Translations under genes and position numbers: made by a program
Part shown: positions 24,778 to 61,212 of the stretch, in pieces
How the letters are laid out: each line of letters begins with the position of its first letter
How positions within the stretch are numbered: the first letter of the stretch is position 1
DNA from: Scyliorhinus canicula
Lineage: Eukaryota
Length of the DNA: 64,000 bases
NCBI RefSeq assembly: GCF_902713615.1
Contig: NC_052169.1
Coordinates: 18,186,439-18,250,438, forward strand
Direction: 5' to 3'
Notes under the pieces: model-generated
What the model was told of the DNA's origin: nothing
The model's input: the letters and a program-made list of their open reading frames with translations, nothing else
Database searches by the model: none

Positions 24778-27439
24778 TGATGTACCATCAATTGGACGCG
24801 AGACACGATGAAGATCCAAACTGTGGCTTTAATCAGCTAGTTGTTAGCCCGGTGGTCGACTACAGAGAAAGACCGACTGCCGGGAAACCTGGGTACTTAT
24901 ACCCTGCCTTGGAGGCGGGGTCTACTTGCCTCTCGACCAATTGGTGAGCAGTCACATGACTAGTCCCAGCCAATCAGACGAGAGGCACATGACCAGCCAG
25001 AGCCAATGGGAAACCAATGCTCTGCACCAATGGCAGTGCTCCCACTCATAACACCACATTCACCCCTTGTGGAGGAACAAGGCGGGGGGGGGTGTGTGGG
25101 GGAAGAGAGAGGGGTGGTCCGAGGACTGGTGGTATGAGTAGAGATAATCGAAGATATGGGCTGCCCACTGGCTCGTGGCAAAAATAAACAATACTACATT
25201 AGGATGCAAAACAAATTACAATAGAGTCCAATAAGGTCCCATGGTTGCATCAGATGGTCACGATCAGCCTGTCGGGTGCCTGTGATGTTCTGGTGGACCA
25301 TCGCAGTGGAGCCGGTGACGTTGGGCCGATGGTCGTCCTTGCCTCTGGGAGCGTCGGTCGTAGATGTGTCTCCGTACCACGGGCCGGTGGTGGAGACGCT
25401 GTAATTGGGGAAGGGGGGGTATATGTGCTGGGTCGTGGGGGCGCGGGGGGCGCTTGGGGGAATTGGGGTTGGGGGGGCGGGTGTTGATGGAAGAGGAGAA
25501 GGCCGCACGCCAGCGGGTGCCAGGTCCCGGAGTGAGACCGTATCCTGCCGATCGTCGGGATACTCCACGTACGCATACTGCGGGTTGGCATGGAGTAACT
25601 GGACTCGCTCAACCAACGGGTCGGACTTGTGCACCCGCACCTGCTTCTGGAGCTAGATAGGCCTGGGAGTGGCCAGCCAGGTCGGGAGAGGGGATCCTGA
25701 GGACGACTTCCTGGGGAAAACAAGAAGACGTTCATGAGATGTTTGATTAGTGGTAGTACAGAGGAGAGACCGGATTGAATGCAGGGCGTCGGGGGTGACC
25801 TCTTGCCAACGGGGCATAGGGAGATCTCTGGACCGTAGAGCCAGCAGGATGGTCTTCCAAATGGTGCCATTCTCCTGCTCGACCTGACCGTTACCCCGGG
25901 GGTTACCCCTGGTTGTCCTGCTGGAGGCTATGCCCCTGCTGAGCAGGAATTGACGCAGTTCGTCACTCATAAAGGAGGTAGAAGTGCGGTTTGCACTCGG
26001 CGCAGACGTGGCAGTCCCTGGTGACGGTCCTGACTTCCTCAACGGAGTAGGGCGGGTTGCGGGTCTTAATAAAATGGTAAAAACGGGTGACCCCTGGATG
26101 GCAGAGGTCCATGTGGAGGGAGCGGAGGCGGTCAATCTGCGCGCTGGCACAGGTACCGCGGGATAGGGCATCGGAAGGCTCGTTGAGCTTCCCAGGACGG
26201 TACAAGATATCGTAGTTGTACGTGGACAACTTGATCCGCCACCGCAAGCTCTTGTCGTTCTTGATCTTGCCCCTCTGTGCATTATCGAACATGAAAGCTA
26301 CTGATCGTTGGTCTGTGAGGAGGGTAAACCTCCTGCTGGCCAGATAGTGCTTCCAATATCGCACAGCTTTGACAATGGCCTGTGCCTCCTTTTCCACCGA
26401 GGAGTGGCGGATTTCGGAAGCGTGGCGGGGTCGTGAGAAGAAGGCCACGGGTATGCCTGCTTGGTTCAGGGTGGCCGCCAGAGCTACGTCAGATGCGTCG
26501 CTCTCGACCTGGAATGGGAGGGACTCATCGATAGCATGCATCGTGGCCTTTGCGATATCCGCTTTGATGCGGCTAAAGGCCTAGCGGGCCTCCATCGACA
26601 GGGGAAAAGAGGTGGACTGGATGAGGGGGCGGGCTTTGTCGGCGTAATTGGGGACCCACTGGGCGTAATATGAGAAGAAGCCCAGGCAGCGTTTGAGGGC
26701 TTTGAGGGAGTTGGGGAGAGGGAGTTCCATCAGGCGGCGCATGCGTTCGGGGTCGGGGCCTATCACTCCGTTCGCACTACGTAGCCGAGGATAGCTAGAC
26801 AGTCGGTGCTAAACACGCACTTATCCTTATTGTAGGTTAAATTAAGGAGTTTTGAGGTTCGGAGGAATTTTTGAAGGTTGATGTCATGGTCCTACTGGTC
26901 GTGGCCGCAGATGGTGACGTTATCGAGGTACGGGAAGGTAACCCGTAACCCATGCTTGTCGACCATTCGGTCCATGTCCCGTTGGAAGACCGAGACCCCA
27001 TTTGTGACACCGAATGGAACCCTGAGGAAGTGGTAGAGGCGCCCATCTGGCTCAAACGCAGTGTGCTTGCGGTCAATCGCGCGGATGGGGAGCTGGTGGT
27101 AAGCAGACTTAAGGTCCACCGTGGAAAAGACTTTGTATTTCGCAATCCTGTTAACCAGGTCGGAAATACGGGGGAGAGGGTACGCGTCCAGCTGCGTGAA
27201 CCTGTTGATGGTCTAACTGTAATCAATGACCATCCAGTTTTTCTCCCCAGTCCGAACTACCAGCACTTGGGCTCGCCAGGGACTGTTGCTGGCCTCGATA
27301 ACGCCTTCCATAAGGAGCCTCTGGACCTCGAACCCGATGAAGGTCCGGTCCTGGGCATTGTATCGTCTGCTCCGAGTGGCGACCGGTTTACAATCTGGGG
27401 TGAGATTAGCAAACAAGAAAGGGGAGTCCACTTTGAGGG
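24778..27439 (-). mobile_element. 5'-truncated Ty3/Gypsy retrotransposon (RT, RNase H, internally deleted integrase, PPT, 3' LTR 24778-25058)
   Basis: DLKSAYHQ, PFGVTNGVSVFQ, YLDN; ESDASD..LAATL; HPGV..CHVCAEC zinc finger; RT-RH-IN order; 281-bp TG..CA LTR preceded by AAGGGGTGAA. Confidence 0.9.
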
Positions 27440-30727: not shown

Positions 30728-30993
30728 CTATAACTGATTAAGCTCAGGTGCCTCTGTTTCAGAATAAATAGGGTTTTCTTCCATTTTTAGCGGGCCATGT
30801 TTTGGGTCATTTTCCTCCAGGTGGGACTGTGTCTCCGTGTTTCTGAGACTCCCAGTCTCAGGGTAGCTGATCAAAGAGTAAGCCTGGTCATCAGATGACA
30901 CAATGGGATCTTGCTCTTTCAATGGTGACTGGTCATTGAGTTCAGTGGCTGGAGAGGTTTCAACCTGACGCCCATGGTTCAGGTGGTCTTTGC
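30728..30993 (-). CDS. Copy B exon 10 (QAYSLI, NPIYSET)
   Basis: Paralog of 4967..5232. Confidence 0.8.
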
Positions 30994-33900
30994 CTAGGTA
31001 TTAAGAGAGATCGTGTTTAAGGAGGCTCGCCAGCAATCGGAGGCAAATAATGACAGCGAACAGTTTAGTTCCATGAGATAAAGGTTTAGGAGCTTTCAAA
31101 CAGTTACAGGTTGGATTGTACTGAAAGATTAAAGCTACTTACGTTTCGCTCCCTGGGTTTCAGTTTTGTCTCCATCACTTCGGAAAACAGAAAATGAAAA
31201 ATGTGAAAACTGAGTCACAAAAGATTCAAGTAATATTTTAATATCTCTCATTGGAGTCTTGATTCAGCCACTTTCTCCCCAAGGTCTGGATTTGAACCCA
31301 GCCCAGGCTGAAATTCTCTCATTCACATTGCTTCTCTCTCTCGTTGCTTCTCTGAACCTCTCTGTCTGTCAGTCTGTCTAATTCTCTCCTTGACTTCCTG
31401 TGTCTCTCTCGCTGACACTCTGGCCAAACTGACCAACTGTGGCTGCCGGGGCGGGGGGGGGGGGGGGGGGGGGGGGGATGCGTAGACCTGTGAGGGCAGA
31501 GGGGTGGGGTAGGGTGAACTACACGCTACCAGCCCATCCATTCAGTTGCAGGTGATCCCATAACTCAAAACAAAATGCATGCCAGGCCAAACGCATGTGC
31601 AGAAACAACCAGCAAAGGAAGGAATTGGGGACAAAATCCTTCCCTGGAAGGCCCGAACCACCAGGATACAGGTGAAAGGCCGAAATACGGGACAGTCCAA
31701 CCTGGTCAGGATTTTCTGGCCCAACCAATCATCACGGGCAGGGTGGAAAATTTGACAGACCTGCAAAAGATCCATTGACTTTGAACGGGAGCAGAAAATC
31801 CTCGTCGTGGCTGCCTTTCTTCCTTGTTTCTTTCTGTGATGGGCTCTCTCCACTTCTCTCTCCNNNNNNNNNNNNNNNNNNNNNNNNNNNNNNNNNNNNN
31901 NNNNNNNNNNNNNNNNNNNNNNNNNNNNNNNNNNNNNNNNNNNNNNNNNNNNNNNNNNNNNNNNNNNNNNNNNNNNNNNNNNNNNNNNNNNNNNNNNNNN
32001 NNNNNNNNNNNNNNNNNNNNNNNNNNNNNNNNNNNNNNNNNNNNNNNNNNNNNNNNNNNNNNNNNNNNNCTCTCCCCTTCCCTCACTTCCCTCTCTGTCT
32101 GTCTCTCACTCTGTCTCTCGCAGGGTCCTGTATCGGCAGCCACAGCTGCGAGGGGCACTCCGGGGCCCTGCTAGGCCCCTGCAAAATGGAGAATCACTCT
32201 GGACTACCTCCAGGAAAGTCCAGAGTGATTCGCACCCGTTTTCTCACGGGTGTGGGGACACAGCCCCATTATCATTATCATGTGGGGACAATCAGGCCTA
32301 AAGCTATGATCTGCAGATTTAAACAGATATAAATGGGAAACCCCGAGTGGAATTCTCTGATAATGGGGCCATGTCCCCAAGCCCATTTTGCAGGGGGCTT
32401 GCAGGGCCCCGGAGTGCTCCTCGCAGCTCCGGCTGCCGATATGGGGCCCTGCACTTCCAGCCGCGGGTCCGTGCATGCGCGCGACGGTCATCTGCGGCGG
32501 CGGCCCCATGGAACACCGTAGGCCTGCCCCGCCAATATAGCCCCCCCCCCCAACCGAGATCACACTTGCCAGCTGATCAGTGGCCCCTGATCGTGAGCCT
32601 GGCCGTCCTGGAGGCCCCCCCCCCCCCCGGTGATGGTCCGCAGCCGCCACTCCGAATTCCCGCCGGGTGGAACCATGAGTGAACCATGCCGACGGGAACT
32701 CGGCCAGTTATCGGCAGAGAATCGCCGTGGGGGCCTCTTACAATGGCCCCCAACTGGCACTGTGTGCGTGATTGGCGGCGATGCTTCGGTCCCCGGGGAA
32801 TCGCAGGAGTGGCGTCAGACCCGATCGCGGGTCTGACACACATTCTCCGCCCCCATGCCGAGCGCGATTGCGGCGCGGAGGCTCAGAGAATACCGGCCCT
32901 AACTTTTAAAGTCGGGATTCCCGTCGTGTCAGTGATGGGGACAATCGAGTGGGGAAATTCCACCAGCGTAAAATCCATTTTGGACTCCCGCTCCATACTC
33001 CACCCCCTCTGTTGTTCCTGCCCCCTGAAAACTGGGGTGGCAAATCCTGGTCTATGATTTAAAATTGTTGAATTAATTGTTGAGTCTAGAAGGCGAAAGT
33101 TGAAAGATGAGGGGCGGGATTCTCCCCTACCCGGCGGGGCGGGAGGTCCCGGCGGGATGGAGTGGCGTGAACCACTCCGGCGTCGGGCCGCCCCAAAGGT
33201 GGGGAAATCTCCGCACCTTTAGGGGTCAAGCCCTAAAATTGAGAGGGAGGCGGCGCTGGAGTGGTTGGCGCCACGCCGGCCGGTGGGAAAGGCCTTTGGC
33301 GCCATGCCATCCGGTGCCGAAGGGACTTCGCCGGCCGGCGGAAGTCCGCGCATGTGCCGTAGCGTCAGCGGCTGCTAACATCATCCCCGCGCATGCGCAA
33401 GGGAGGGGGTCACTTCCGCCTCCGCCATCGTAAAGACTATGGCGAAGGCGGAAGGAAAAGTGTGCCCCCACGGCACAGGCCTGCCCGCCGATCGGTGGGC
33501 CCCGATCGCGGGGGCCAGGCCACAGATTGCCCCCCCCCACCAGGACTCCGGAGCCCACCCGCGCCGCCTGGTCCCACCAGTAAGGTAGGTGGTTTGATTC
33601 ACGCTGGTGGGACCGGCATGAAAGCGGCGGGCCGGAGAATCGCCGGGGGGGGGGAGGGGGGGTCCACCCAAAGGCGCGGCGCGATTCCCACCCCCACCGA
33701 ATCTCTGGTGCAGGAGACTTTGGGAGGCAGTGGGGGCGGGATTCACGCCGGACCCCGGCGATTCTCTAACCTGGCGGAGGGGTCGGAGAATCCCGCCCGA
33801 GGTGCTGGTCCTCGAGCTTGCCTTGAGCTTCACTGGAACATTGCAGCAGGCCAAGGCCGGGAGGTCAGGGCAAGGTGGAGAATTAAAATGACAAGTAACT

Positions 33901-36900
33901 GGGAGCTCGGGCTCACACTTACAGACTGAATTGAGGTGTTCTGCAAAATGGTCACCCAGTCTGCATTTGGTGTTCCCCAATGTAGAGGAGGCCACACAAT
34001 GAGCAGCAAATACAATATGTTGGCTACATTGTAAAAGGTACAAGTAGGTTGCTGTTCCACTGAGAGTGAATGTTTGGGGCCTCGGATGGTGAGAATGGAG
34101 GAGATAAAAGGAGAATCCTCAGCCGAGGGGAAAGGAAGACACATTGAAAGTGCTTATATAAAAGGTTACATTGTCCACAAAGATGCGATAGAGATGGAGA
34201 AATTGGAAAAATGAACTGGAGGTGGGAGAAAGTGTAGTCAAGGGAGTGATGCAAGTCAGTGTATTTATAGTATTGGTATCCCAGAAATGGAGGCCGCAAA
34301 GTCAAGGGAGGGAAGTGAAGAGTCAGAGATGGATGAAGTGAAGGTGACAGAAGGGTGGAAATTAATGTAAAGTCAATGAAAGTTTCCAATTCAGAGGGTG
34401 AGAGCTTATAAGGCTGGTCAAAGTGGAGAACAGCCATTGATCAGCATGGAATCCTTCACTATATTAACCATTCTCTAATCCTCCACTCCCCCCTAAAGAT
34501 CACTGTTGTCAGTTCCGGAAGTTGCTGGAGCTGATGTCTGACACTCTGTGTACCTTTTAACTGCTGATTCATCGATCAAACAGTACACATGCTCTGTGGA
34601 GGCAGAGGTAGAGTGGGTGCCCTGTCCTTCTCCAGGCCTTGGCTGGCTCATTGCCGTTGGAACACTGGACACTGCGTACGCAACATGTTCATTTTCATCT
34701 GTCTGTTCCTTCCTGGGAAACACAGAGTATGGTAAACCTAGAAGAAAGGATTGCAACGCAAGGTCTGCTGTCAGTTTCAACTCTCAAAATGATAGGCTCG
34801 GTAATGTTGGGCAGTAATCCTGGTCACTTACATTCGTCCTCCTGTGTCAGTTGCACATCACCGTCCCTACAGTTATTAAAAAATAGATTTGTAAATATTT
34901 CATTAAATGGACAGGACAATGCAGAAATGTCCAAAAACTGAGTGAAAACCCTGCCTACCTCTGTCCGGGTGCCGAGGATCCTTCACAAATGTAACAAGAT
35001 TGGAAAGACAAAGTTAAAAATCTTTGGAAGGAGTCTGCATTAAATATAATTTTCTAGATTTAAATTCAACATTTTATAACTCTGACTTACCTTTGCCCAT
35101 TTGTCGTTTCCGTCTGATTATGCAAATTGCCCCAACAATGCAAATAAGTGCAACCACACACACTATGGCGATGATCACAGGTTTATTTTTACTGTTTAAA
35201 TCTACAGAGGAGAAGCAACATTAGATTCAGGTTGTGCAATCCTGTATTATACGTCAGGTTTCTTACACTGCCTACCTAACTTTCTAGTTACAATCTGGAA
35301 TAGTAAATGGCGAAGGGAGGAAATTGAACCAATTTACAATGGGTACAAACTGTACAAACAGACCCAGAATTTCTCAGCTGGAGTTATTGACATTAAATGA
35401 TTCATATCGCGGATGATGTGTTGGGTAAGCTGGGTCTGCGAGGACTGCGTTTACCATAGCAGTGAGAGAGACAGGCTTCCAACACTTGGAGAAATGCAAC
35501 TCGATTTTATTGAACTACCAACTATTAAACATACTTTAACTGTGGGTTGACACTATGCTGAGTTGACTGAAGACCCGAGGCTAACCTGACCAGACTATCT
35601 TACTACCAGATGGTGTATGTTCTAGTTGCTGCTCACAGGCTCTGGCTGTCTCAGAGGCTGCATCCCAAGAGAGCGGGAAAACTAGTGCCCTCTGGCTTTA
35701 TAGTGGCCGTGTCCTGTCTGGTGGTTGGCTGCTGTGTTCTGTGTTCATTGGTCATCATGTGTGTCAATCAATGTCTGTCTGTGCACCATCATATATTTGT
35801 GTGTATATTATGACAGCTTACTTACTTACTTTCACTTTTGAGAGGAGTTACACTGGTGGTCACTGGAGATATTTTGAGTGTTGAGTTGAGGGTGTCTGAC
35901 GATACACTACTCCAGATTGCAGTCAAGGTTACCTGGTCTGGGGAACTAACATTCCAGGTAGAATCTGGAATGATAAATGGCGAAGGATGGAAATTGAGCC
36001 AGTTTACAACGGCTACAGACTCCCTCAGCTGGAATTCTTGATATTAAATGATTTATATCATATTGTCCATTGTCTGACTTACCGTCACTATTTGTATGAG
36101 TTCCACTGCTGGTCACTGAGGATAATCCAGATGTTGAGGTCACTGAGGATAATCCAGATGTTGAGGTCACTGAGGATAATCCAGATGTTGAGGTCACTGG
36201 GGATAATCCAGATATTGAGGTCACTGAGGATATTCCAGATATTGAGGTTTGAGTCTCCGGAGATTCTGTATTTTCTGTCACAGTGAGGGAGATGTTTGCT
36301 GCAATCTTCCAGACAGGTTTCCCTTTGGCCTGAGCGTGTACAACACAGAGATACCTCCCAGTGTCCATCTCCGTGACTGAGTGAATAGTAAGGTTGTGAG
36401 CCTGGTTTGCATTTGTAGGATTGTGTGAGCTTTGGTTAGAGATTCTTTGTGACAACTTTCTATCCACACAGCATCGTGTGTTAGAATGTACATCCCCTCC
36501 CTCAATATGTACAGAGTGCAGACACTGGTTAATTTCTCCAGATGTGATCCAAAACAGAGTGAAGGGCTGGGATTCTTTATTCTCAAACAGGCAGGGTAAA
36601 GTCACATTCACTCCCTCTGACACTAACGAGGGGTTTTCATCAGTGGAAATTACTTTGTCTGAATCTAGAAACAACATTTAAAAGAATAATTGTTACTCGA
36701 ATAATCTCCAACGTGGTACTTTAGGGGCTGGTTTAGCTCAGTGGGCTAGACAGTGGGTTTGTAATGCAGAACAAGGCCAGAGCACGGGTTCAATTCCCGT
36801 ACACGCTGAGAATTCTGAATTCTCCCTCTGTGTATCCGAATGTGGCGACTAGGGGATTTTCACAGTAACTTCATTGCAGTGTTAATGGAAGCCTACTTGT

Positions 36901-39900
36901 GACAATAAAAGATTATTGTTATTGTCAAAGGATTTCCAGAAGTCCATGTTAACCACATTCACTGCATTTCTCCATTTACCTTGTCTGTTACGTCCTCAAC
37001 AGTTTGTCAAGCACATCGGGGGGAATTTTCATTTTTGTCTAGCCCACCGGCTCAATGCCAGCTTTTCCAGCCAGACGTTTTGAAACTCAGTCAAAAGAAA
37101 TCCTGGGGGCGGGTCCGAGGACGTCACTCTGACGGGATGGGCTCTGATTGAACCTGCCCACCAGGAACTTTAAGAGACCCGAGCGCCCTTCGATCCAAAC
37201 AGAATTAAATTAGAGAGAGGTGTCGTCCCTCCCGGAAATTAGGTGCTCCCCCATAAACACGCCTCTCGCTCGACAAGCCCCACCAAGCACGCAACCCCCG
37301 CCCCCTCCCCCAACCAGGAATATCCCCCTCCCCATACAGCTCCACATTATCTTACCCACACCTCTACTGGGAACTGCAATGCCAGGGGCAGTGCTGGGGG
37401 CAATGCCTGGGGACACTGTCTGGGCACAGTGCCAGGAGGCAGTGTCTGGGGACAGTGCCTGGGGACACTGTCTGGGCACAGTGCCAGGAGGCAGTGAATG
37501 GGGACAGTGCCTGGGGACACTGTCTGGGCACAGTGCCAGGAGGCAGAGTCTGGGGACAGTGCCAGGAGGCAGTGTCTGGGGACAGTGCCGGGGGGAGTGT
37601 CTGGGCACAGTGCCAGGAGGCAGTGTCTGGGGACAGTGCCAGGAGGCAGGGTCTGGGGACAGTGCCAGAAGGCAGTGTCTGGGGACAGTGCCAGGAGGCA
37701 GTGTCTGGGGACAGTGCCGGGGGGAGTGTCTGGGCACAGTGCCAGGAGGCAGGGTCTGGGGGCAGTGCCAGGAGGCAGTGTCTGGGGGCAGTGCCAGGAG
37801 GCAGTGTCTAGGGGCAGTGCCAGGAGGCAGTGTCTGGGGGCAGTGCCAGGAGGCAGTGTCTGGGCACAGTGCCAGGAGGCAGTGTCTAGGGGCAGTGCCA
37901 GGAGGCAGTGTCTGGGCACAGTGCCAGGAGGCAGTGTCTGGGCACAGTGCCTGGGGACACTGTCTGGGCACAGTGCCAGGAGGCAGTGTCTGGGGACAGT
38001 GCCAGGAGGCAGTGTCTGGGCACAGTGCCAGGAGGCAGTGTCTGGGCACAGTGCCAGGAGGCAGTGTCTAGGGGCAGTGCCAGGAGGCAGTGTCTGGGCA
38101 CAGTGCCAGGAGGCAGTGTCTGGGCACAGTGCCTGGGGACACTGTCTGGGCACAGTGCCAGGAGGCAGTGTCTGGGGACAGTGCCAGGAGGCAGTGTCTG
38201 GGCACAGTGCCAGGAGGCAGTGTCTGGGCACAGTGCCAGGAGGCAGTGTCTGGGCACAGTGCCAGGAGGCAGTGTCTGGGGACAGTGCCGGGGGGAGTGT
38301 CTGGGGGCAGTGCCAGGAGGCAGTGTCTGGGGACAGTGCCAGGAGGCAGTGTCTGGGGGCAGTGCTGGGGGGAGTGTCTGGGCACATGCCAGGAGGCAGT
38401 GTCTGGGGTCAGTGCCGGGGGGAGTGTCTGGGCACAGTGCCAGGAGGCAGTGTCTGGGGACAGTGCCAGGAGGCAGTGTCTGGGGGCAGTGCCAGGAGGC
38501 AGTGTCTGGGGACAGTGCCAGGACGCATTGTCTGGGGGCAGTGCCAGGAGGCAGTGTCTGGGGACAGTGCCAGGAGGCAGTGTCTGGGGAAAGTGCTGGG
38601 GGGAGTGTCTGGGGGCAGTGTCTGGAGGCAGTGTCTGGGGGCAGTGCCAGGTGGCAGTGTCTGGGGGCAGTGTCTGGGGGCAGTGCTGGGGGGAGTGTCT
38701 GGGCACAGTGCCAGGAGGCAGTGTCTGGGGACAGTGCCAGGAGGCAGTGTCTGGGCACAGTGCCAGGAGGCAGTGTCTGGGCACAGTGCCAGGAGGCAGT
38801 GTCTGGGCACAGTGCCAGGAGGCGGTGTCTGGGCACAGTGCCAGGAGGCAGTGTCTGGGCACAGTGCCAGGAGGCAGTGTCTGGGCACAGTGCCAGGAGG
38901 CAGTGTCTGGGGGCAGTGTCTGGAGGCAGTGTCTGGGCACAGTGCCAGGAGGCAGTGTCTGGGCACAGTGCCGGGAGGCAGTGTCTGGGGGCAGTGTCTG
39001 GAGGCAGTGTCTGGGGACAGTGCTGGGGGGAGTGTCTGGGCACAGTGCCAGGAGGCAGTGTCTGGGCACAGTGCCGGGGGGAGTGTCTGGGCACAGTGCC
39101 GGGAGGCAGTGTCTGGGGGCAGTGCCAGGAGGCAGTGTCTGGGGGCAGTGCCAGGAGGCAGTGTCTAGGGGCAGTGCCAGGAGGCAGTGTCTGGGGGCAG
39201 TGCCAGGAGGCAGTGTCTGGGGGCAGTGCCAGGAGGCAGTGTCTGGGCACAGTGCCAGGAGGCAGTGTCTAGGGGCAGTGCCAGGAGGCAGTGTCTGGGC
39301 ACAGTGCCAGGAGGCAGTGTCTGGGCACAGTGCCAGGAGGCAGTGTCTGGGGGCAGTGCCAGGAGGCAGTGTCTGGGGGCAGTGCCAGGAGGCAGTGTCT
39401 GGGCACAGTGCCAGGAGGCAGTGTCTGGGGGCAGTGCCAGGAGGCAGTGTCTGGGGGCAGTGCCAGGAGGCTGTGTCTGGTCACAGTGCCAGGAGGCAGT
39501 GTCTGGGGACAGTGCCAGGAGGCAGTGTCTGGGCACAGTGCCAGGAGGCAGTGTCTGGGCACAGTGCCAGGAGGCAGTGTCTGGGCACAGTGCCAGGAGG
39601 CAGTGTCTGGGGCAGTGCCAGGAGGCAGTGTCTGGGCACAGTGCCAGGACGCATTGTCTGGGGGCATGTCGGGGGGAGTCTCTGGGCACAGTGCCAGGAG
39701 GCAGTGTCTGGGGACAGTGCCAGGAGGCAGTGTCTGGGGAAAGTGCTGGGGGGAGTGTCTGGGGACAGTGTCTAGAGGCAGTGTCTGGGGGCAGTGCTGG
39801 GGGGAGTGTCTGGGCACAGTGCCCGGAGGCAGTGTCTGAGGACAGTGCCAGGAGCCAGTGTCTGGGGACAGTGCCGGGGGGAGTGTCTGGGCACATGCCA

Positions 39901-41867
39901 GGAGGCCGTGTCTGGGGGCAGTGCCGGGAGGCAGTGTCTGGGCACAGTGCCAGGAGGCAGTGTCTGGGCACAGTGCCAGGAGGCAGTGTCTGGGCACAGT
40001 GCCAGGAGGCAGTGTCTGGGGGCAGTGCCGGGAGGCAGTGTCTGGGCACAGTGCCAGGAGGCAGTGTCTGGGCACAGTGCCAGGAGGCAGTGTCTGGGGA
40101 CAGTGCCGGGAGGCAGTGTCTGGGCACAGTGCCGGGAGGCAGTGTCTGGGCACAGTGCCAGGAGGCAGTGTCTGGGGACAGTGCCAGGAGGCAGTGTCTG
40201 GGCACAGTGCCAGGAGGCAGTGTCTGGGCACAGTGCCAGGAGGCAGTGTCTGGGGACAGTGCCAGGAGGCAGTGTCTGGGCACAGTGCCAGGAGGCAGTG
40301 CCTGGGCACAGTGCCGGGGGGAGTGTCTGGGGACAGTGCCGGGGGGAGTGTCTGGTCACAGTGCCAGGAGGCAGTGTCTGGGGGCAGTGCCGGGGGAGTG
40401 TCTGAGGGCAGTGCCTGGGGACAGTGTCTGGGGGCAGTGCCGGGGGGGGAGTGTCTGGGCACAGTGCCAGGAGGCAGTGTCTGGGGACAGTGCCGGGGGG
40501 AGTGTCTGGGGTAGTGCCGGGGGGCAGTGTCTGGGGGCAGTGCCAGGAAGCAGTGTCTGGGGGCAGTGCCGGGGGGAGTGTCTGGGGACAGTGCCAGGGG
40601 GCAGTGTCTGGGGGCAGTGCCAGGGGGGAGTGTCTGGGGGCAGTGCCGGGGGGAGTGTCTGGGGGCAGTGCCGGGGGGAGTGTCTGGGGGCAGTGCCGGG
40701 GGGAGGGTCTGGGGGCAGTGGCAGGAAGCAGTGTCTGGGGGCAGTGCCGGGGGGAGTGTCTGGGGGCAGTGCCGGGGGGGAGTGTCTGGGGGCAGTGCCG
40801 GGGGGAGTGTCTGGGGGCAGTGTCTGGGGGCAGTGCTGGGGGGAGTGTCTGGGGGGAGTGTCTGGGCACAGTGCCAGGAGGCAGTGTCTGGGCACAGTGC
40901 CGGGGGGAGTGTCTGGGCACAGTGCCAGGACGCAGTGTCTGGGCACAGTGCCAGGAGGCAGTGTCTGGGGGCAGTGCCAGGAGGCAGTGTCTGGGGGCAG
41001 TGCCGGGGGGAGTGTCTGGGGGCAGTGCTCGGGGGAGTGTATGGGGACAGTGCCGGGGGGAGTGTCTGGGCGCAGTGCCAGGAGGCAGTGTCTGGGGGCA
41101 GTGCCGGGGGGAGTGTCTGGGGGCAGTGCCTGGGGGCAGTGTCTGGGGGCAGTGCCAGGGGGCAGTGTCTGGGGGCAGTGCCGGGAGGCAGTGTCTGGGG
41201 GCAGTGCCGGGGGGCAGTGTCTGGGGGCAGTGCCAGGAAGCAGTGTCTGGGGGCAGTGCCGGGGGGAGTGTCTGGGGGCAGTGCCAGGAGGCAGTGTCTG
41301 GGGGCAGTGCCGGGGGGAGTGTCTGGGGACAGTGCCGGGGGGAGTGTCTGGGGGCAGTGCCGGGGGGAGTGTCTGGGGACAGTGCCGGGGGGCAGTGCCT
41401 GGGGGCAGTGTCTGGGGACAGTGCCGGGGGGAGTGTCTGGGGACAGTGCCAGGAGGCAGTGTCTGGGGGCAGTGCCAGGAGGCAGTGTCTGGGGGCAGGG
41501 CCGGGGGGAGTGTCTGGGGACAGTGCCAGGAGGCAGTGTCTGGGGACAGTGCCAGGAGGCAGTGTCTGGGGGCAGGGCCGGGGGGAGTGTCTGGGGACAG
41601 TGCCTGGGGACAGTGCCAGGAGGCAGTGTCTGGGGGCAGGACCGGGGGGAGTGTCTGGGGACAGTGCCTGGGGACAGTGCCTGGGGACAGTGCCTGGGGG
41701 CAGTGTCTGGAGCACTGTCAGGATACTTACCGGATATAATCCTCCCCCCCCCCCCCTGGGGCTGTATTAACTGTGCCCCCCCCCCCCCCCCCCCCCCTCC
41801 TCCACTCCCCCTGTTCTCTTTACCACATCCCCGTTTGTCAAGCCAACATGACATCACGTCAGCCGGG

Positions 41868-41900
<33 letters not shown>

Positions 41901-44900
41901 ACATGACATCACGTCAGCCGGGTTGGGGGGGGATAACTCAGATGAAATGTGTGACCTGACATTGTGTTAATGGTATTAGGACGGAAGTTGAGATTTTTGT
42001 TCAACCTTCCAACCAGACAGATTGCAAAAGGAGTGGGAGGCTGTGAAGTACCAAGTGTACATTCTGAGTGTGTTTCTGTGCATCAGTGACAGTGAGTAAC
42101 ACCGGGGCAGACCCATCCTTTGAAAAAACGCTGTGATGCAGATACTAACTATCTGAACACTCAAGAGCTTTTAGTCAATGGTAACACTGCATCAACCCCC
42201 TCCATCCACTCTCACAGAGGATTAACATGGAACACAGGTTGAATGTTGGGTCACAATTTCACGTTTCACACGGGTGAGAATGTAACCCATGGCCTGTGAT
42301 TCCACCGGACTGGATCTAAGATAAATTGAAGGTCTGCCTCCCCATGACCTTACCAGCAACAGCCGTCCACATGATTGTCACATGGAAACATTCTTCCCTA
42401 CACCTGTGTTCTAATTTATTTTCACCAGTCTTAGCTCAAATTCCTTGTTCCAGTATCTTAACGTATCTTCAGTAGAGTCTGAACTTGCTGCATGAACGGT
42501 GCTGAATATAATTTTATGATTACTCTTCAGTTCATGTGTGTCACTGGCAATTTGCTATTTGTTGCCCATCACTAGTTGTCGTGGAGAAGTTGATATTCTA
42601 CCTGCCCCGCGGTGTCCATGTGGTGTGGGTACCCCCAAATGCTGTTGGGAGGGAGATCCTGGAGTTTGCCACAGTGAAGGAATGAAGATACAGGCCCCGA
42701 TCTAACCCTGTATCTAACCCGGACCCCGGTGTAAAAGCCTTTTGGGGAATCTTGGGTGGGATTCTCCGCTACCCCGCGAGGCGGGCCGTTCAGGCGCCGA
42801 GGAGTGGCGTGAACCACTCAGGCGTCGGGCCACCCGGAAGGTGCGGAATCCTCCGCACCTTCAGGGGCTAGGCCAGCGCCATCGGAGTTGGCATCGTGCC
42901 AACCGGCACCGAAGGGCCTCCGCCGGCCGGCGTGAGTTGGTGCATGCGCGGGAGCGCCCCCGTCAACCCAGCGCATGCGCAGTAGAGTTATTCTCCGTGC
43001 CGGCTATGGCGGACCGTTAAGCGGCCGGCGCAGAGGGAAAGAGTGCCCTCACGGCACAGGCCCGACCGCGGATCGGTGGGCCCCGATTGCAGGCCAGGCC
43101 ACCGTGGGGGCACCCTCCAGGGCCAGATCCCCCCGCGCCTTCCCTGAGGACACTGCAGGCCGCCCGTAGAGCCAGGTCCCGCCGGTACCGACCTGGTTTG
43201 ATTTACGCCGGTGGTACCTGCCAAAAACAGGTGGCCGCTCGGCCCATCGCGGGCTGGAGAATGGCCGGGGGGGATATTCCTGGTGGGGGATGGGGGGGGG
43301 GGGGGGTTGTGTGCTTGGTGGGGCTTGCCGAGGGAAGGGCGTGTTTATGGGGGAGCTCCTCATTTATAGGAGGGACCAAACCTCTCTTAATTTAATTCTG
43401 TTTGGATCGAAGGGCGCTCGGGTCTCTTGAAGGATTCACTCCGCTCTCCGGCCTAGCGGGGGGGTCGGAGAATCCCGCCCCATGATGGATTCTCCGCTCC
43501 CGCCGCCAATCCCACCTGTCAAAAACATGGGCAGAAAATGCCGGCCATCCTCTTTGGAATCTGTGTTGGTTGCGCCTCACATTCTATTATTTATTTACAT
43601 ACTTGATAATCTCATCTCAGTAAAGAATCTAAAATTGTCCCGAATGCCCACTAACTGTCCTAATGACCCCCGAACATCTCAGCTTAAATCTCTCCAATGA
43701 GCCTGGAATAATTCCCCTGATCTCTCCTGTGCACATACCGCTCAGATCTATCACCAGGAACAGGTCGTAGGTTTCACATCCTTTCTGTGTCAGGCTGGCC
43801 CAGGATGGACATTTTGATGATCCTCCTTTTCGGGTGGAATCTTGAACGGTGCAGGTAAATACCATTGAGTGATCTGGCTTCACAGCAAATGCCTTATCTT
43901 CATTTAATTTGCATTTCTGACACTGCAGTTTCCCTTTCCGATTCTTTTTCCGATTCTTTTTCTGAGGACCGATATTTTCGCAATCACCGTCTCCACGTTG
44001 TTTTCCACATGTTTCCATAGTTGCTGTTTCAGGACTGAAATCACTCATTGTGCACAAGGTTTTTACAGACCCAGCACCGGTACATTGTAGAATGGTGACA
44101 TCTCCTGATCTTCGGGGGAAGAGATAGGTGGATCCTGCAGGGAAAAGGACAGAATCAGATGAAGATAAATAACATTCCACGCAGAAGGATAATTAAATCT
44201 CAATGCCAATCAAAGCCTCGCACAGTAAACGTAAAATTGTAATTTTTGTTACACCACACAACGAGCTGCACAGTTAATTGCTGTTCCATTCATAAATCTT
44301 TGCAATCTATCAATATTTGCCAATTCAGAGCAATAGATTTTACAGAATTTACAGTGCAGATGGAGGCCATTCGGCCCATCGAGTCTGCACCGACTCTCGG
44401 AAAGAGCACCCTGCCCAAGCCCATACCTCCACCCTATCCCCATAACCCAGTAACCCCACCTAACACTAAGGGCAATTTGGACACTACGGGCAATTTAGCG
44501 TGGCCAATCCACCTAACCCGCACATCTTTGGACTGTGGGAGGAAACCGGAGCACCCGGAGGAAACCCACGCACACACGGGGAGAACGTGCAGACTCCGCA
44601 CAGTGACCCAAGCTGGGATTCGAACCTGGGACCCTGGAGCTGTGAAGGATTTGTGCTAACCACTGTGCTACCGTGCTGCCCTGAATAGACTGACTTTTTC
44701 CTGAAGGTAAATAATAATAATGCAACTTCGATCATCATCCTCTCTAAATTTTAAATTGTATTAATTTACAGGATGTGGCGTCACTGGCTTGGGCGGTGTT
44801 TATTCCCCATCCCTAACTGCCCTTGAGATGATGGTGGTGAGCACAGTGCTGCTTCAGTGGGATTTCCACAACTTTGACCCAGTGGCAGTGAAGGAACAGA

Positions 44901-47085
44901 GAAAGGTGGATCCTGCAGGGAGAGGACAGAACCAGATGGAGATAAATAACATTCCACAGAGGAAATATCATTCCAATTCTGTCATCTCCCCTTGATATTC
45001 AATGGCAACAATATTCTCGAGATTACCATTGTTGCTCGTTGTGTTCTCTCTTTAATTGTCTCTGTTTATGGCGGCTAATATGGTCGCCGTTCTTAATTCT
45101 AATTACGTTTGCTCAAGAGTCGCCAGGTATCTCTCGATACCACCACAAGGTTCAAAACCGAATACTGATCAAAGACTCGATACACCAGTTAGTAAGTTCG
45201 AAATCAATGCTCATTTATTTACACACACAGTCAAATATACTCATGCACAAAACTGTACCAACTAAACTATCACTACTACTAAAGCCTATACTTAGCTTCA
45301 GGCGCCCACTCAGTCAGAGGAACAATGGCCGTTGTCCGGTTCTGAGGCTGCTGGGGTTGAGCTGGTACGGAATAGCAGATAAGAGCGTCTGCCTCATAGC
45401 GTGCATTGACTTTGGACTTACCTGTTCTGGTGCAGCTGCTAGGCAGCTCTCTCCTCACTGAGAGCCAAGGCCAAGAGAGCGATTCTCTCTCGGGGGCTTC
45501 TTCTTATACCCAAAGGGGGCTTCGCGCGCTTTTGGGCGGGCCTTGAACTTGGTTCCAATTAATTGGACTGCATCTAGATCATTCCTATCGATTTCCTCCA
45601 ATAAAGGGGTGGCTGCCCTGATCGCTGGGCGGGCCCTAGGTGGCCGTTGGCCTGCTTTGTTCTAGTCTCCTCTGGCACCGGGGTGTCTGCCTTAGTATCG
45701 TTTACCTAAATGTTACCCTTTTGTCCCCGGAGATGGCCCATTAGTATGGCAATGGCTTTGCAGTATCGGCCTAGTCTGGGAGCTACAGCTCCAATCAACA
45801 GACAAACCTTGCACCTGCTTGCTTTCTCAGCATTGTCCATTTTCCCTGCATTCTTTGTAAAGTGTCCATTTTGTAATCGTGACGTGGCCGTCCCAGATGG
45901 CCACACCATTGACCATTGACTGAAGCTCAGTTGGCTGGACAGCTGGTTTGTGATGCAGACCAAGGCTAATAGTGCAGTTCAATTCCGGTACTGGCTGAGG
46001 TTATTCATGAAACTCAACCTTGTCCCTCGCCTGAGGTATGGTGACCCTTAGTTTAAGTCACCACCAGCCAGCTCTTCGCCCCTCAAAGGGGGAAGCAGCC
46101 TATGGTCATCTGGGACTATGGCAAGGTTACCTTTTACATCAAACTGGCTTCCAAGAGCAGGAATTACAAGGCTGGGAATTCTGTGGTGTGTAACTCACCC
46201 CCATGACCTTCAAAACCTTTCCACCATCTGTAAAACAGGTCAGGAGTTGAATTTTGACACAGAAACATGAATATTGCATAGAACAGTACAGCACAGTACA
46301 GCCCCTTCGGCCCACGATGTTGTGCCGACCATTTATCCTAATCTAAGATCAACCGAACCTACACTCCATCAATTTACCGCTGTCCATGTGCCTGTCCAAG
46401 AGTCACTTAAATGTCCCTAATGACTCTGACTCCACCACCTCTGCTGGCAGTGCATTCCACGCACCCACCACTCTCTGTGTAAAGAACCGACCTCTGACAT
46501 CTCCCCTATACCTTCCTCCAATCACCTTAAAATTATGTCCCCCCGTGACAGCCATTTCCGCCCTGGGGAAAAGAATATTGCTGCAAAGTCAGGGTGAAGG
46601 GGATGTATAAACGTGGCAGAATGTGATGAAAATTTGGATTCAATAATACTGAACCATTACTTCTATAAGTATTGTATTTAATTGTGGTTCTTTGCCAGAA
46701 CTAACTGGCCAACTCACTCTCTCTACAGTCCTGTTTCTTTCACAACTTCAAATACTTATCTAATTCTCAGTTAAAAGATGAATGATCTCTGCTTCAACCA
46801 CTGCTTGTCAAAGCATTCCATTGCCCCCACTCTCTGTGTAAAGAATTGCTCCTAGTCTCTCCTCACTCTCTGAATCAAACTGATGGTCCATGATCGCACC
46901 ATGATAAAGTAACACAGCAAACACCATCATTTGACTGTGTTAAACATCTACACAAGAACAGCAATGATTTATATCCTTTTTGTCCAGATGAGGAATATGT
47001 TGAAGATTAATGGAGACTATTCGTCCTTACCTGCAACATGTTGGAACAGGAGAAAAAGACCCAGAAACAAAGTATCGAGAGCCAT
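30728..47085 (-). CDS. Gene copy B: intact 10-exon type I IgSF receptor, ~597 aa (leader, Cys-rich Ig-like D1, V-set D2 + mucin stalk, stalk 2, TM, Tyr-motif tail); CD300/MDIR-like architecture
   Basis: join(complement) 47031..47085, 43739..44134, 36083..36664, 35830..35937, 35091..35201, 34959..34980, 34832..34866, 34554..34737, 31143..31177, 30728..30993 = 1794 nt. All GT-AG, phases 1,1,1,1,1,2,1,2,1 are compatible, no internal stop seen. Confidence 0.85.
31143..31177 (-). CDS. Copy B exon 9
   Basis: Paralog of 5382..5416. Confidence 0.7.
31864..32069. other. Assembly gap (206 N) at the paralogous position
   Basis: Ns. Confidence 0.99.
34554..34737 (-). CDS. Copy B exon 8, Tyr-motif exon
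   Basis: Paralog of 8964..9147. Confidence 0.75.
34832..34866 (-). CDS. Copy B exon 7
   Basis: Paralog of 9242..9276. Confidence 0.7.
34959..34980 (-). CDS. Copy B exon 6
   Basis: Paralog of 9369..9390. Confidence 0.6.
35091..35201 (-). CDS. Copy B exon 5, TM (PVIIAIVCVVALICIVGAICIIRRKR)
   Basis: Paralog of 9501..9611; tgtag acceptor. Confidence 0.9.
35830..35937 (-). CDS. Copy B exon 4, stalk
   Basis: Paralog of 10240..10347. Confidence 0.75.
36083..36664 (-). CDS. Copy B exon 3, V-set D2 + five TSTSGLSSV-type repeats
   Basis: 582 nt, open; Cys-Trp-Cys V-set core with DTGRYLC; N-glycosylation sequons NVT, NQS, NLT, NIS. Confidence 0.9.
37378..41718. repeat. Same minisatellite expanded to ~4.3 kb
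   Basis: Read directly; same flanks as in copy A. Confidence 0.95.
43739..44134 (-). CDS. Copy B exon 2, D1
   Basis: 396 nt, open, same splice sites; within ORF 43629..44180. Confidence 0.75.
47031..47085 (-). CDS. Copy B exon 1, signal peptide
   Basis: Same as copy A exon 1. Confidence 0.85.
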
Positions 47086-49589
47086 TTCAAATTCCACACC
47101 GTCTTTGCTCGGTGAAGAAGTAAAAAAACAGCAGCATGGGGAATTACGAATATTGGTCAAAACGGATTATTTTCTACTACCCGAGTGGTAGGTTCGCCCT
47201 CACATCCTGATCTGTGAGAAAGAGAAGTTGGACTTGCTTCCTGTTTGACCAACTCTGATGAAATGTGTGGCCTGACGTTATGTTAATGGTATTGGGACGG
47301 AAGTTGAGATTTTTGTTCAACCTCCCAACCAAAGAAATGACAAAAGGTGTAGGAGGCTGTGAAGTACCAAGTGTATGTTCAGAGGGTGTTGCTGTGTTTC
47401 AGGTTCCATCCCGCTCTGAGTCACTGTCCGTGTGGAGTTTGCACATTCTCCCCATGTCTGCGTGGGTTTCACCCCCACAACCCAAAGATGTGCAGGATAG
47501 GTGGATTGACCACGCTAAATTGCCCCTTAATTGAAAAAAAAATAATTTGTATATAAAAGAAAGGGGGATCATTACACCAGTGAAAAATAATTGGGCACTC
47601 TAAATTTAAATTAAAAAAAAACATTCTTCCCAACATCTGTGTTCAAATTTATTTTCACCCGGCTTAGTTCAAACTCCTTCTTCAAATTATCTCAATGTAT
47701 CTTCAGAGAGTCTAAACTTGCTGCATGAACGGTGCTCAATATAATTTTGTGATTACTCTTCAGTTCAAGGATATTACTGGCAATTTGCTATTTGTTGCCC
47801 ATCACTAGTTGTCGTGGAGAAGTTGATGGAGAATATTCTACCTGCCCCGCGGTGTCCATGTGGTGTGGGTACTCCCACAGTGCTGTTAGCAAGGGAGATC
47901 CTGGGGATTGCCACAGTGAAGGAATGAAGATAAAGGGCCCGATCTACCAGCCGCAGTGCGCCAGGCGTGAATATGAGTGAGTCGGTTAGCTAGTGGGAGA
48001 GGCCAAAATTGGGAACCACGCTGGGCAGCGATTGGTTTCTGATCTAACTGGCCTGTTCCCGTTGGCAAGATCCAGATCCCGCTGCGGCGTAGTGAGAAAC
48101 CAATAATCACTGATTAAGACCAATCATTAATGTGAAGGACTCCCTATCGCAGTGTTTTCAAACTTTTTTTCACTTTTACCAACCGACGGACCTTTGGGAC
48201 CCACTCCAGCCAACATTCGCAACCCACGCCGGCCAACCTTAGCGACCCACGCCGGCCGACCTTAGCGACCCATGCCAGCCGACCTTTGCGACCCACGCCG
48301 GCCAACCTTAGCGACCCACGCCGGCCGACCTTAGCGACCCATGCCAGCCGACATTAGCGACCCACGCCGGCCAGCCTTAGCGACCCACGCCGGCCAACCT
48401 TAGCAACCCATGCCTGCCGACCTTAGCGACCCACACCGGCCGACCTTTGCGACCCACCATTATTGCTTACCTTTAAAGCGGCAGGTGAGCCTGTTTGGTC
48501 CTCATGATCTCACTTGCTTCGTCATTCAATGTTACATTTCTGCGAAGTCTGACGTCAGCTGACGATTTAAGTTCTTGCTGCATCCTTTGAAAAAAATCAA
48601 GAACTTTGTCTTAGTCTTCAAATGCCATTGAATATTTGAGGGTTTTAAACTTTCATTTGCCAGCACCTCCCTGCATATAACACACATGAACTTTGCATCC
48701 TGACTTCCATTGGCACAATTAAAGCCATACCTCAAGACATCATCTTTATACTGCTTTGTTTCTGATTTCAGTTTCTTCTTCATTGTTTATTCACCAGAAG
48801 TCCTGGAGCTCTGGATACAGCTCACAGCAGCACAGCTTTGTCCTGCTGTGGACTCTCTGTGGAAGCTCTCTCCAGCAGATTCTGTTGTGAGATCCTGGGC
48901 AGTTTGTGTCTCTGCCTCTCTCTTCCTTATTACAAAATATTCCATCTTCAGTTCTTCACACAGTCCTGTTGCTTGCTTGCTGGCAGCTACAAAAAGGAGG
49001 AATCTCTCCTCCATGACTTTCCGCCCAAAGCACAGGCGCACAGGGAGCGTGACATCATATATGTGCTGGGCGCATGACCTTCTCTCAGCTGCTGCCTCTC
49101 GCGGAAAGACTCATTATTCATACTTAAAGGTCTGTCGCAGCCGGCATTCTTTTTTTTACTTTGAAACTTTATTACCAATACCTCATTTTTCTAAGTTTTC
49201 CAAGTGAAACAATTTCAGTTGAACATGCACATCCTTACATTTACACACAAACTTTGTTTTAAATATATTCCCATTTCTTTAGAAATTTGAACAAGTATAG
49301 AAAATGTATGATCTTGTTTTTATTTTGCAAACTATGACTTTAGCCGAGACGAAGTAACTTGTCAAACACACACAATGTCACAATATTTCTTACCGGTTCC
49401 ACTGCATTGCACCATCCAAACATCCAAGTCATCTCCTTCTCCATTCTTACGAAAAGCACTTCAACACTTACATCCTGGATTCCAGAGAGTGGTTACACAA
49501 AGTGATGACTGTGTAGCTTTCTTCCTGACATGTGTCAGCTGCTTTGACTGGCCTCATTTGATCGGTGTTCCTGGCTGACAAACCTGGCC

Positions 49590-59897: not shown

Positions 59898-60163
59898 CTA
59901 TAACTGATTAAGCTCAGGTGCCTCCATTTCAGAATAAATAGGGTTTTCTTCCATTTTTAGCGGGCCATGTTTTGGGTCATTTTCCTCCAGGTGGGACTGT
60001 GTCTCCGTGTTTCTGAGACTCCCAGTCTCAGGGTAGCTGATCAAAGAGTAATCCTGGTCATCAGATGACACAATGGGATCTTGCTCTTTCAACGGTGACT
60101 GGTCATTGAGTTCAGTGGCTGGAGAGGTTTCAACCTGACGCCCATGGTTCAGGTGGTCTTTGC
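59898..60163 (-). CDS. Copy C exon 10 (QDYSLI, NPIYSEM); the rest of gene C lies beyond the window
   Basis: Paralog of 4967..5232, open. Confidence 0.75.
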
Positions 60164-60311
60164 CTAGGTATTAAGAGAGATTGTGTTTAATGAGGCTCGC
60201 CAGCAATTGAAGGCAAATAATGACAGCGAACAGTTTAGTTCCATGAGATAAAGGTTTAGGAGCTTTCAACAGTTACAGGTTGGATTGTACTGAAAGATTA
60301 AAGCTACTTAC

Positions 60312-60346
60312 GTTTCGCTCCCTGGGTTTCAGTTTTGTCTCCATCA
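60312..60346 (-). CDS. Copy C exon 9
   Basis: Paralog of 5382..5416 with splice sites intact. Confidence 0.65.
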
Positions 60347-61212
60347 CTTCGGAAAGCAGAAAATGAAAAAAGTGAAAACTGAGTCACAAAAGATTCAAGT
60401 AATATTTTAACATCTTTCATTGGAGTCTTGATTCAGCCACTTTCTGCCCAAGGTCTGGATTTGAACCCAGCCCAGGCTGAAATTCTCTCATTCACATTGC
60501 TCCTCTCTCTCGTTGCTTCTCTGAACCTCTCTGTCTGTCTGTCTGTTTAATTCTCTCCTTGACTTCCTGTGTCTCTCTCGCTGACACTCTGGCCAAAGTG
60601 ACCAACTGTGGCTGCCGGGGCGGGGGGGGGGATGCGTAGACCTGTGAGGGCAGAGGGGTGGGGTAGGGTGAACTACACGCTACCAGCCCATCCATTCAGT
60701 TGCAGGTGATCCCATAACTCAAAACAAAATGCATGCCAGGCCAAATGCATGTGCAGAAACAACCAGCAAAGGAAGGAATTGGGGACAAAATCCTTCCCTG
60801 GAAGGCCCGAACCATCAGGATACAGGTGAAAGGCCGAAATACGGGACAGTCCAACCTGGTCAGGATTTTCTGGCCCAACCAATCATCACGGGCAGGGTGG
60901 AAAATTTGACAGACCTGCAAAAGATCCATTGACTTTGAACGGGAGCAGAAAATCCCCGACGTGACTGACTTTTATTCCTTGTGTTTCTTTATCTATTTCT
61001 CTGATGGACTCCCTCCACTTTTCTCTATCTCCCTTTTCTCTCTCTCTCCCTTCCCTCACGCAGCCTGTCCGTCTGTCTTTGCCTCAGTCTCTATCTCTCT
61101 CTCTCTCTCTCTCCATATCTGTCTAACTGTCTGAAATAAAAATAGAAAATGCTGGAAATCCTCAACAGATCTGGCAGCTTGGCTGGAGAGAGAACCAGAG
61201 TTAACAATTCAG

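Follow-up and report, generated by a model that had tools for sequence, protein, structure and literature searches.

The V domains of the CD300/TREM/pIgR-like type, the NITR and DICP of teleosts and the MDIR of skates are those of paired innate immunoglobulin (Ig) receptors with extra disulfides and with lipid or polyanion ligands; among V-type innate receptors, lipid or polyanion binding is known for CD300, TREM and RAGE. Siglecs have an inter-domain disulfide between their domains D1 and D2, and a phase of 1 at both ends (1-1) is usual for the exons that encode domains of the Ig superfamily. No lineage with adaptive immunity is older than the cartilaginous fish, whose innate Ig-type receptor families are, to our knowledge, barely described. 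Here we analyse a stretch of 64,000 nucleotides from the catshark Scyliorhinus canicula (assembly GCF_902713615.1, contig NC_052169.1, positions 18,186,439 to 18,250,438), hereafter the window, in which a preliminary description made from the sequence alone had noticed an exon encoding a cysteine-rich domain, D1, and had depicted it as a disulfide-stapled, polycationic, ligand-binding Ig-like domain. Our analysis suggests that D1, as encoded in the gene called here copy B, is specific to sharks and forms the disulfide-rich distal domain, strongly derived and probably Ig-like, of a paired-receptor family.

A single open frame spans the whole D1 exon on the minus strand, from an acceptor AG at 44135-6, preceded by a pyrimidine tract, to a donor GTATGT that starts at 43738. 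With phase 1 at both ends, the exon occupies the slot between the leader exon and a bona fide V-set exon (D2), as is typical of Ig exons. Residues are numbered here from the first whole codon, the exon codon number being the residue number plus one (C17 is codon 18). The nine cysteines lie at exon codons 18, 28, 43, 52, 72, 75, 95, 109 and 120 (residues 17, 27, 42, 51, 71, 74, 94, 108 and 119), and all nine positions are retained in the second copy of the window, A, and in two further copies located just outside it. Translation and copy comparison therefore agree with the preliminary description, which had listed the same codons for A and B, and the motifs on which it drew (GDVTILQC, HSMVFTC, LCTMSDF, KCPSW..GC and KKNRKKNRKGK) were all found. 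Likewise, the cysteines of codons 18 and 95 are 77 residues apart in B- and F-strand contexts (GDVTILQC and HSMVFTC, respectively), the place of the C-strand tryptophan is taken by LCTMSDF in the window copy, KCPSW..GC holds a cysteine pair, and the cysteine count is odd in D1 (nine) as well as in D2 (five, all invariant in the D2 alignment), each as had been claimed.

Transcript-like contigs from three runs belonging to two studies were aligned to positions 43000-47200. Contig depth was confined to the D1 exon, where it was 14-50, and to the leader and 5' untranslated region, the unique part of the intron next to the exon having about 0-5. A direct junction of 47030/1 with 44133/4, which is exactly the predicted leader-D1 splice, is present in two contigs (X1 record 2 and X16 record 17), and these runs therefore behave as RNA. 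Both junction contigs derive from a paralogue or allele (C at 44088), X1 record 2 being of the type of the copies outside the window (L003 and L004), with a loop 9 nt shorter. The KKNR duplication is spanned in X15 and X16 by contigs with zero mismatches that have the bases specific to B (43806 T, 43887 A). Transcription thus extends to D1 exons of the cluster, that of copy B included, and this type of exon is spliced to the leader; inclusion in transcripts, on which the preliminary description had staked its proposal, is thus borne out by contigs spliced from leader to D1. Full-length protein models consisting of leader, D1, D2 and transmembrane segment (TM) are available for S. torazame and ten other sharks. 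A raw oligo-dT RNA run (X20) gave no reads on the D1 exon; its tissue is unknown, so that silence of the gene is not implied.

A profile built from the four copies matched five 50% clusters among 1.84 billion representative proteins, all of them from sharks, with D1 starting at residue 20 in four. Word-indexed searches returned D1 from Pristiophorus, Heptranchias, Heterodontus, Cetorhinus, Carcharodon, Mustelus, S. torazame, Rhincodon, Stegostoma, Chiloscyllium and Hemiscyllium, that is, from 11 shark species, in entries nearly all labelled "uncharacterized protein". Neither the profile nor the word-indexed searches found a ray, skate, chimaera or bony vertebrate protein with D1, and a literature search found no paper on this receptor family. 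As far as these proteins tell, D1 is a domain limited to sharks, and it must be old, since it is common to both shark superorders, whose divergence date makes the conserved nine-cysteine scaffold more than 200 million years of age. Relative to the window copy, S. torazame showed 70-73% identity in D1 and 85-87% in D2, and the other genera 43-56% and 60-73%, respectively, the lower D1 values indicating that D1 evolves faster than D2.

Copies A and B are the products of a ~28-kb tandem segmental duplication in the window. A six-frame search of the 4.2-Gb assembly recovered no more than four full D1 exons, which form a tandem array on this contig; besides those of A and B, they belong to copy L003, ~18 kb upstream of the window, and copy L004, ~4 kb past its end. 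All four have an open D1 frame, both splice sites and nine cysteines. In A and B the TM is uncharged and the tail, which is long, contains several tyrosine motifs of the Yxx(I/V) type. The TM exon of L003 (contig about 18165400-18165600, ext 25261-25377) encodes an Asp (LICIDGVICII) and is followed by a short tail ending in VMEANVKFRK (ext 22008-22037); this copy, the short-tail counterpart of A and B, is orthologous to S. torazame P0017, whose TM also contains Asp and whose tail is also short. Long-tail and short-tail forms both occur in S. torazame, Mustelus, Heptranchias and Heterodontus as well. With related ectodomains carried on long Tyr-motif tails and on charged-TM short tails within one cluster, the gene family looks like a set of paired activating/inhibitory receptors. 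None of the tail motifs of copy B (PYSVF, VAYAVS, HVYCLI, AYSLI and PIYSET) strictly fits the immunoreceptor tyrosine-based inhibitory motif (ITIM), (S/I/V/L)xYxx(I/V/L), which is fitted by VAYSVV of Rhincodon P0004. A rule linking basic D1 domains to long tails and acidic ones to short tails was true in the two Scyliorhinus species, failed in Mustelus and Heptranchias, and was dropped.

The two cysteines expected on strands B and F of an Ig domain are present in D1, L-Q-C at 17 being invariant and S-M-V-F-T-C at 94 being found in 20 of the 22 sequences compared. Conserved segments of alternating hydrophobicity (STYLF, VTxLQC, TLC, [S]LTFAVK, SMVFTC and LFxVI) match strands A, B, C, E, F and G. 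In other sharks, 13 residues separate the B-strand cysteine from the L-C pair, which is the canonical place of the core tryptophan; on strand C the window copy reads T-L-C-T, and only Heptranchias has a tryptophan there (T-W-W-S). Sub-threshold matches to Ig_2, ig and I-set were obtained for 8, 5 and 3 of the 22 D1 sequences, respectively, on the D-E-F strands (profile positions ~35-84), with best orthologue scores of 13-18 bits against cut-offs of 27 (Ig_2), 21.8 (ig) and 23.7 (I-set), and residues 11-115 of the Heptranchias D1 align to Ig_2. The I-set of titin was matched at E = 0.2 by the D1 profile and at E = 0.013 by the Rhincodon D1, and the weak PDB matches up to E = 10 were Ig proteins in 8 out of 8 cases, with the F-strand cysteine in register. 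The language-model neighbours of the Heptranchias D1 were Ig-family clusters at 0.88-0.89, which is only a lead; a feature search of the ESM Atlas with the window D1 gave no usable match. Isolated weak Pfam matches (GPR15L, GF_recep_IV, Fusello_VP2 and others) were discarded as noise, each involving 1-3 members at E >= 0.014 and being mutually inconsistent, and so was, as a low-complexity match, the trypanosome variant surface glycoprotein (E = 1.2) that the Heptranchias D1 alone retrieved from PDB.

Across the 22 D1 sequences from 11 shark species, C17, C108 and C119 are invariant, and C27, C42, C71 and C94 nearly so; all nine positions are kept in most of the sequences at least, a pattern not due to chance. 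Two species have lost cysteines in pairs, Hemiscyllium by C51>Y and C71>H, and Heptranchias by C27>W and C74>H. Within L-Q-C-Q-K-C-K-L, C71 and C74 lie three positions from each other and, on a strand, would face opposite sides, which fits one of them pairing into the core, with the residue that took the place of the tryptophan, and the other tethering the loop. From the two co-loss events, the canonical pair 17-94 and the adjacent pair 108-119, we infer a disulfide map of 17-94, 27-74, 51-71 and 108-119, with C42 unpaired. The disulfide-stapled architecture foreseen in the preliminary description is supported to that extent, through cysteine conservation and the co-losses that suggest 27-74 and 51-71. 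The five cysteines of D2 are invariant across the shark homologues compared and, the count being odd in D2 too, a disulfide between D1 and D2 or between chains is possible; an ESMFold2 complex prediction of D1 and D2 scored 0.02, which is no evidence either way on contact or disulfide.

Tandem Repeats Finder and the nucleotide alignment of the four copies confirmed that KKNRKKNRKGK stems from a 12-bp tandem duplication, A and B having 12 extra bases with respect to the two flanking paralogues. Because only A and B have it, the duplication is younger than their separation from the flanking copies and older than the ~2% divergence between them. The net charge of D1 is +10 in copy A, +7 in copy B, -4 in L003 and -13 in L004, with values of +11, +8, -3 and -10, respectively, for the loop C42-K80, and the loop charge in other sharks ranges from -3 to +7. 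The motif XBBXBX occurs twice in A and B and is absent from the flanking paralogues and from most other sharks. The polycationic character of the loop is not a conserved property of the domain, given that L003 and L004 have an acidic version and other sharks one of mixed charge. Judging from this spread, the basic patch is one extreme of a fast-evolving charged surface and not a conserved polyanion site; of the polycationic ligand binding previously proposed, the basic patch is real in A and B, whereas the acidic loops of the flanking paralogues and the mixed charge in other sharks speak against it as a trait of the domain in general.

The substitution pattern also points to rapid change. Paralogue dN/dS values ranged from 0.8 to 4.7, and the L003 and L004 exons differ by 17 non-synonymous and 1 synonymous changes (12:0 in the loops). 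The D1 exons of these two copies are 4.7% diverged and their introns ~20%, with many gaps (L003:1497-1877 vs L004:1497-1877), which suggests a recent homogenisation of the exon, through gene conversion limited to it, with amino-acid changes thereafter. The divergence between A and B, at 4.3%, is twice as large in the exon as in the flanks (2.1%; Fisher p = 0.013). No contigs encoding S. torazame P0018 were found, and the dN/dS values are thus from paralogues only.

In the explanation that we favour, with moderate confidence, D1 would be the membrane-distal extracellular domain of a type I receptor composed of leader, D1, V-set D2, Ser/Thr stalk, TM and a tail with Tyr motifs, within a shark-restricted, tandemly duplicated family with paired-receptor features. 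Most likely it would fold as a strongly diverged Ig-like beta-sandwich that keeps the canonical B-F disulfide C17-C94 and in which Cys27 has taken the place of the C-strand core tryptophan and is probably bonded to C74, as a second disulfide of the core. The long charged loop C42-C74 would be tethered by C51-C71 and the FG loop closed by C108-C119, leaving C42 as the odd cysteine. The charged loop would act as a fast-evolving recognition surface, and the KKNR duplication would represent a recent replication slippage in the ancestor of A and B that made D1 strongly cationic and generated two heparin-type XBBXBX motifs. Contact with the ligand would probably be electrostatic and copy-specific, with polyanions as candidate ligands for A and B only.

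Several observations weigh against this explanation. The window D1 matched no Pfam family at E values up to 10 and reached no Ig-clan threshold, and comparison of the D1 profile with the V-set profile of D2 gave an hhalign probability of 0.08%, that is, no similarity. The AlphaFold check that the preliminary description had recommended yielded no confident model of an Ig sandwich or of any other fold, the mean predicted local distance difference test score (pLDDT) of D1 under AlphaFold2 being 31.3 with the 4-sequence alignment and 32.5 with the 22-sequence alignment; with ESMFold2, pLDDT was 29-32 for D1 and 68-69 for D2 in the same run. Single cysteine losses occur in Carcharodon, Mustelus and two sawshark paralogues, and the co-loss events behind the disulfide map are only two. 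The 17:1 ratio is a merely suggestive signal of positive selection (one-sided binomial p = 0.08). The D1-to-D2 splice was not seen in S. canicula, contigs having been compared over 43000-47200 only, with that junction outside. Finally, P0025 and P0026, the public models for S. canicula, both begin within D2 and leave D1 out, and protein searches returned no S. canicula protein with D1. The public protein set of this species therefore seems to lack the leader and D1 exons, in spite of the contigs that splice the two together. As for the low pLDDT, we read it as an effect of the orphan family rather than as proof of disorder, since nine conserved cysteines and alternating hydrophobic segments are unlike a disordered region. 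The earlier, plausible claim of an Ig-like domain draws on the cysteine contexts, the phase 1-1 exon, its position between leader and V-set exons, the weak Ig matches and the Heptranchias tryptophan, and lacks a Pfam match, similarity to D2 and a confident fold; on balance, we consider it likely that D1 is Ig-like.

A pLDDT of about 30 in three predictions, while D2 folds at 68-69, would also be expected if D1 were a lineage-specific, Cys-knotted or largely disordered, disulfide-tethered N-terminal module, i.e. a new small fold with a charged low-complexity loop. Such a module would agree with the absence of a Pfam match in the window copy, of D2 profile similarity and of a usable language-model match, and its nine cysteines in 131 residues and its ~30-residue stretch rich in K/E/N/Q are atypical of Ig domains. 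However, the recurrent weak matches are all to Ig families, in register with the F-strand cysteine, the phase 1-1 exon sits in the slot of an Ig exon, the conserved hydrophobic segments match Ig strands, one orthologue has its tryptophan at the canonical position, and low pLDDT is to be expected of an orphan family of 22 sequences, so we hold this module to be unlikely. It is also doubtful that the D1 domains of the whole family are polycationic and share a conserved role in binding polyanions, for example phosphatidylserine, heparan sulfate, lipopolysaccharide or nucleic acid. The charges of A (+10) and B (+7) would suit such a role, as would QKKNRK and RKKNRK, which fit the Cardin-Weintraub XBBXBX motif, and the loop is basic too in Heptranchias (+3 overall, loop +7) and in S. 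torazame P0018 (+6), but its charge is negative in the flanking paralogues (-3, -10) and neutral or negative in Mustelus, Pristiophorus and Hemiscyllium, only A and B have the KKNR duplication, and copy A has a stop codon in D2.

This stop codon, an in-frame TGA, would instead suit an exon that is in decay because constraint on it has been relaxed, in a cluster partly turned to pseudogenes, and that has no function any more in S. canicula, as would paralogue dN/dS values near or above 1, the omission of D1 from the public S. canicula models and the lack of reads on the D1 exon in the oligo-dT run X20. We judge such decay very improbable: open frame, splice sites and nine cysteines are kept by all four copies, the framework is conserved over 11 shark species of both superorders, exon-restricted depth and contigs spliced from leader to D1 were obtained from three runs in two studies, and the changes are concentrated in one loop whose charge has shifted directionally, which fits selection over drift. 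A more far-reaching possibility, which appears quite unlikely to us, is that D1 might be a shark-specific module for recognition, possibly with a fold no longer identifiable as Ig, whose disulfide-tethered loop would have been selected to opposite charge extremes (+10 to -13) in neighbouring paired-receptor genes. If true, this would amount to a germline 'charge-switch' repertoire, with one gene family covering polyanionic and polycationic ligands.

The remaining exons of copy B were mapped with S. torazame P0018 as a guide (Table 1). The D2 exon does not end at 36260, but continues through a Ser/Thr-rich stalk to the GTAAGT donor after 36083. D2 scored above the Pfam cut-offs of Ig_3, Ig_CD22 (36.4 bits vs a cut-off of 27) and V-set. 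The stalk segment 36083-36260 consists of SGLSSVTSTS-like peptides in tandem, an array that is longer in A and B than in S. torazame, and it is owing to this repeat that one source names the Heptranchias homologue 'serine-rich adhesin for platelets-like'. Small cytoplasmic exons lie between the TM exon and the last exon of copy B. The public model of gene B (LOC119956791 isoform X2, 312 aa, P0025; window 30731-36476) starts at a Met inside D2.

Table 1. Features of the D1 gene cluster mapped in the window (positions in the 64,000-nt stretch)
Feature	Position	Strand	Description and basis
D1 exon, gene copy B	43739..44134	minus	396 nt, phase 1-1, 131 whole codons, nine Cys; frame and splice sites
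Exact 12-bp tandem duplication, KKNR-KKNR	43935..43962	minus	2.3 copies; Tandem Repeats Finder: period 12, 100% matches; shared by A and B
Leader (signal peptide) exon	47031..47085	minus	18 codons + 1 base, donor GTAAGG; 94% identity to S. torazame P0018 N-terminus; scan and splice contigs
Exon 3: D2 V-set Ig domain (five Cys) and Ser/Thr-rich repeat stalk	36083..36664	minus	phase 1-1; Pfam, tblastn, donor GTAAGT after 36083
Transmembrane exon	35089..35201	minus	uncharged TM, then RRKRQ; 3' boundary approximate
Cytoplasmic exon	34556..34735	minus	conserved Tyr motifs PYSVF, VAYAV, HVYCLI; matches annotated S. canicula product P0025
Last coding exon	30731..30991	minus	AYSLI and NPIYSE motifs, then stop
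D1 exon, gene copy A	15807..16202	minus	92% amino-acid identity to B, nine Cys, same KKNR duplication
Inverted partial copy: D1 acceptor region and first ~36 codons	14725..15133	plus	98% to 44035-44443, inverted

The TGA of copy A lies at 10884-10886 (minus strand) and interrupts SNTRCC, a conserved motif of D2; the corresponding codon of copy B is CGA (36474-36476). Either copy A is a pseudogene, then, or all its products skip D2. The public model P0026 ('putative GPI-anchored protein pfl2') starts at the Met next after this TGA. The inverted partial copy is only 95% identical to the neighbouring copy A. Much of intron 2 is made up of a G+C-rich satellite with a period of ~26 bp, extending over 37376-41723 in copy B (4.3 kb) and 11800-13374 in copy A (1.6 kb); intron 2 of the upstream paralogue L003 is only ~1.5 kb long. 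A very high-copy repeat resembling a short interspersed element (SINE), at 44269-44691, adjoins the D1 exon, with contig depths of up to a million in all runs and abundant raw RNA reads on both strands. A run of 1,478 N at window-equivalent positions 65463-66940 falls between the D1 exon of L004 (about 67773-68156) and its 3' exons (window 59901-60378).

The locus thus offers a receptor family found only in sharks, with a distal domain that eludes Pfam as well as two structure predictors, and in which a nine-cysteine scaffold is kept while a single loop flips charge between tandem paralogues. The four natural D1 variants at one locus provide a test system for the electrostatic diversification of germline receptors, and the analysis flags exons missing from the recovered public catshark protein models. 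Its main interest should be for comparative immunology and, D1 being a 'dark' domain, for the determination of structures.

Compared with described domains and receptors, D1 resembles Ig domains of the I-set/C2 type (titin I-set, CEACAM, MuSK Ig) in the spacing of its B/F cysteines, about 77 residues apart, in its phase 1-1 exon and in its post-leader position, and, in its E-F region, the motif L.F.V...S.VFTC is aligned with strands D-E-F in the profiles of Ig_2, ig and I-set. Unlike them, it stays below all Pfam thresholds, has no C-strand tryptophan in S. canicula, carries seven extra cysteines and gives no confident AlphaFold2 or ESMFold2 fold, and it is predicted to have a ~30-residue charged insert between C' and D and a long, disulfide-closed FG loop. 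The heparin motif of Cardin and Weintraub is fitted twice in tandem by A and B, although here it was made by a recent 12-bp duplication absent from paralogues and most other sharks, and a motif match alone is no proof of binding. With Siglecs and CD22 the family shares a D2 that passes the Ig_CD22 cut-off and odd cysteine counts in the adjacent D1 and D2, but the CD22-like match is on D2 rather than D1 and the domain order differs. A further parallel is with the receptors of the CD300/TREM/pIgR, NITR/DICP and MDIR kind. D1 differs from them in having no detectable similarity to their V domains and in being limited here to sharks, the charged TM residue of the sharks is Asp instead of Lys/Arg, and the Tyr motifs do not appear to be canonical ITIM or immunoreceptor tyrosine-based activation motifs; the likeness does not imply orthology. 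Both nevertheless combine type I receptors in a tandem multigene cluster, extra cysteines in the V domain, a fast diversification of the distal domain, and long-tail forms with Tyr motifs alongside short-tail forms with a charged TM.

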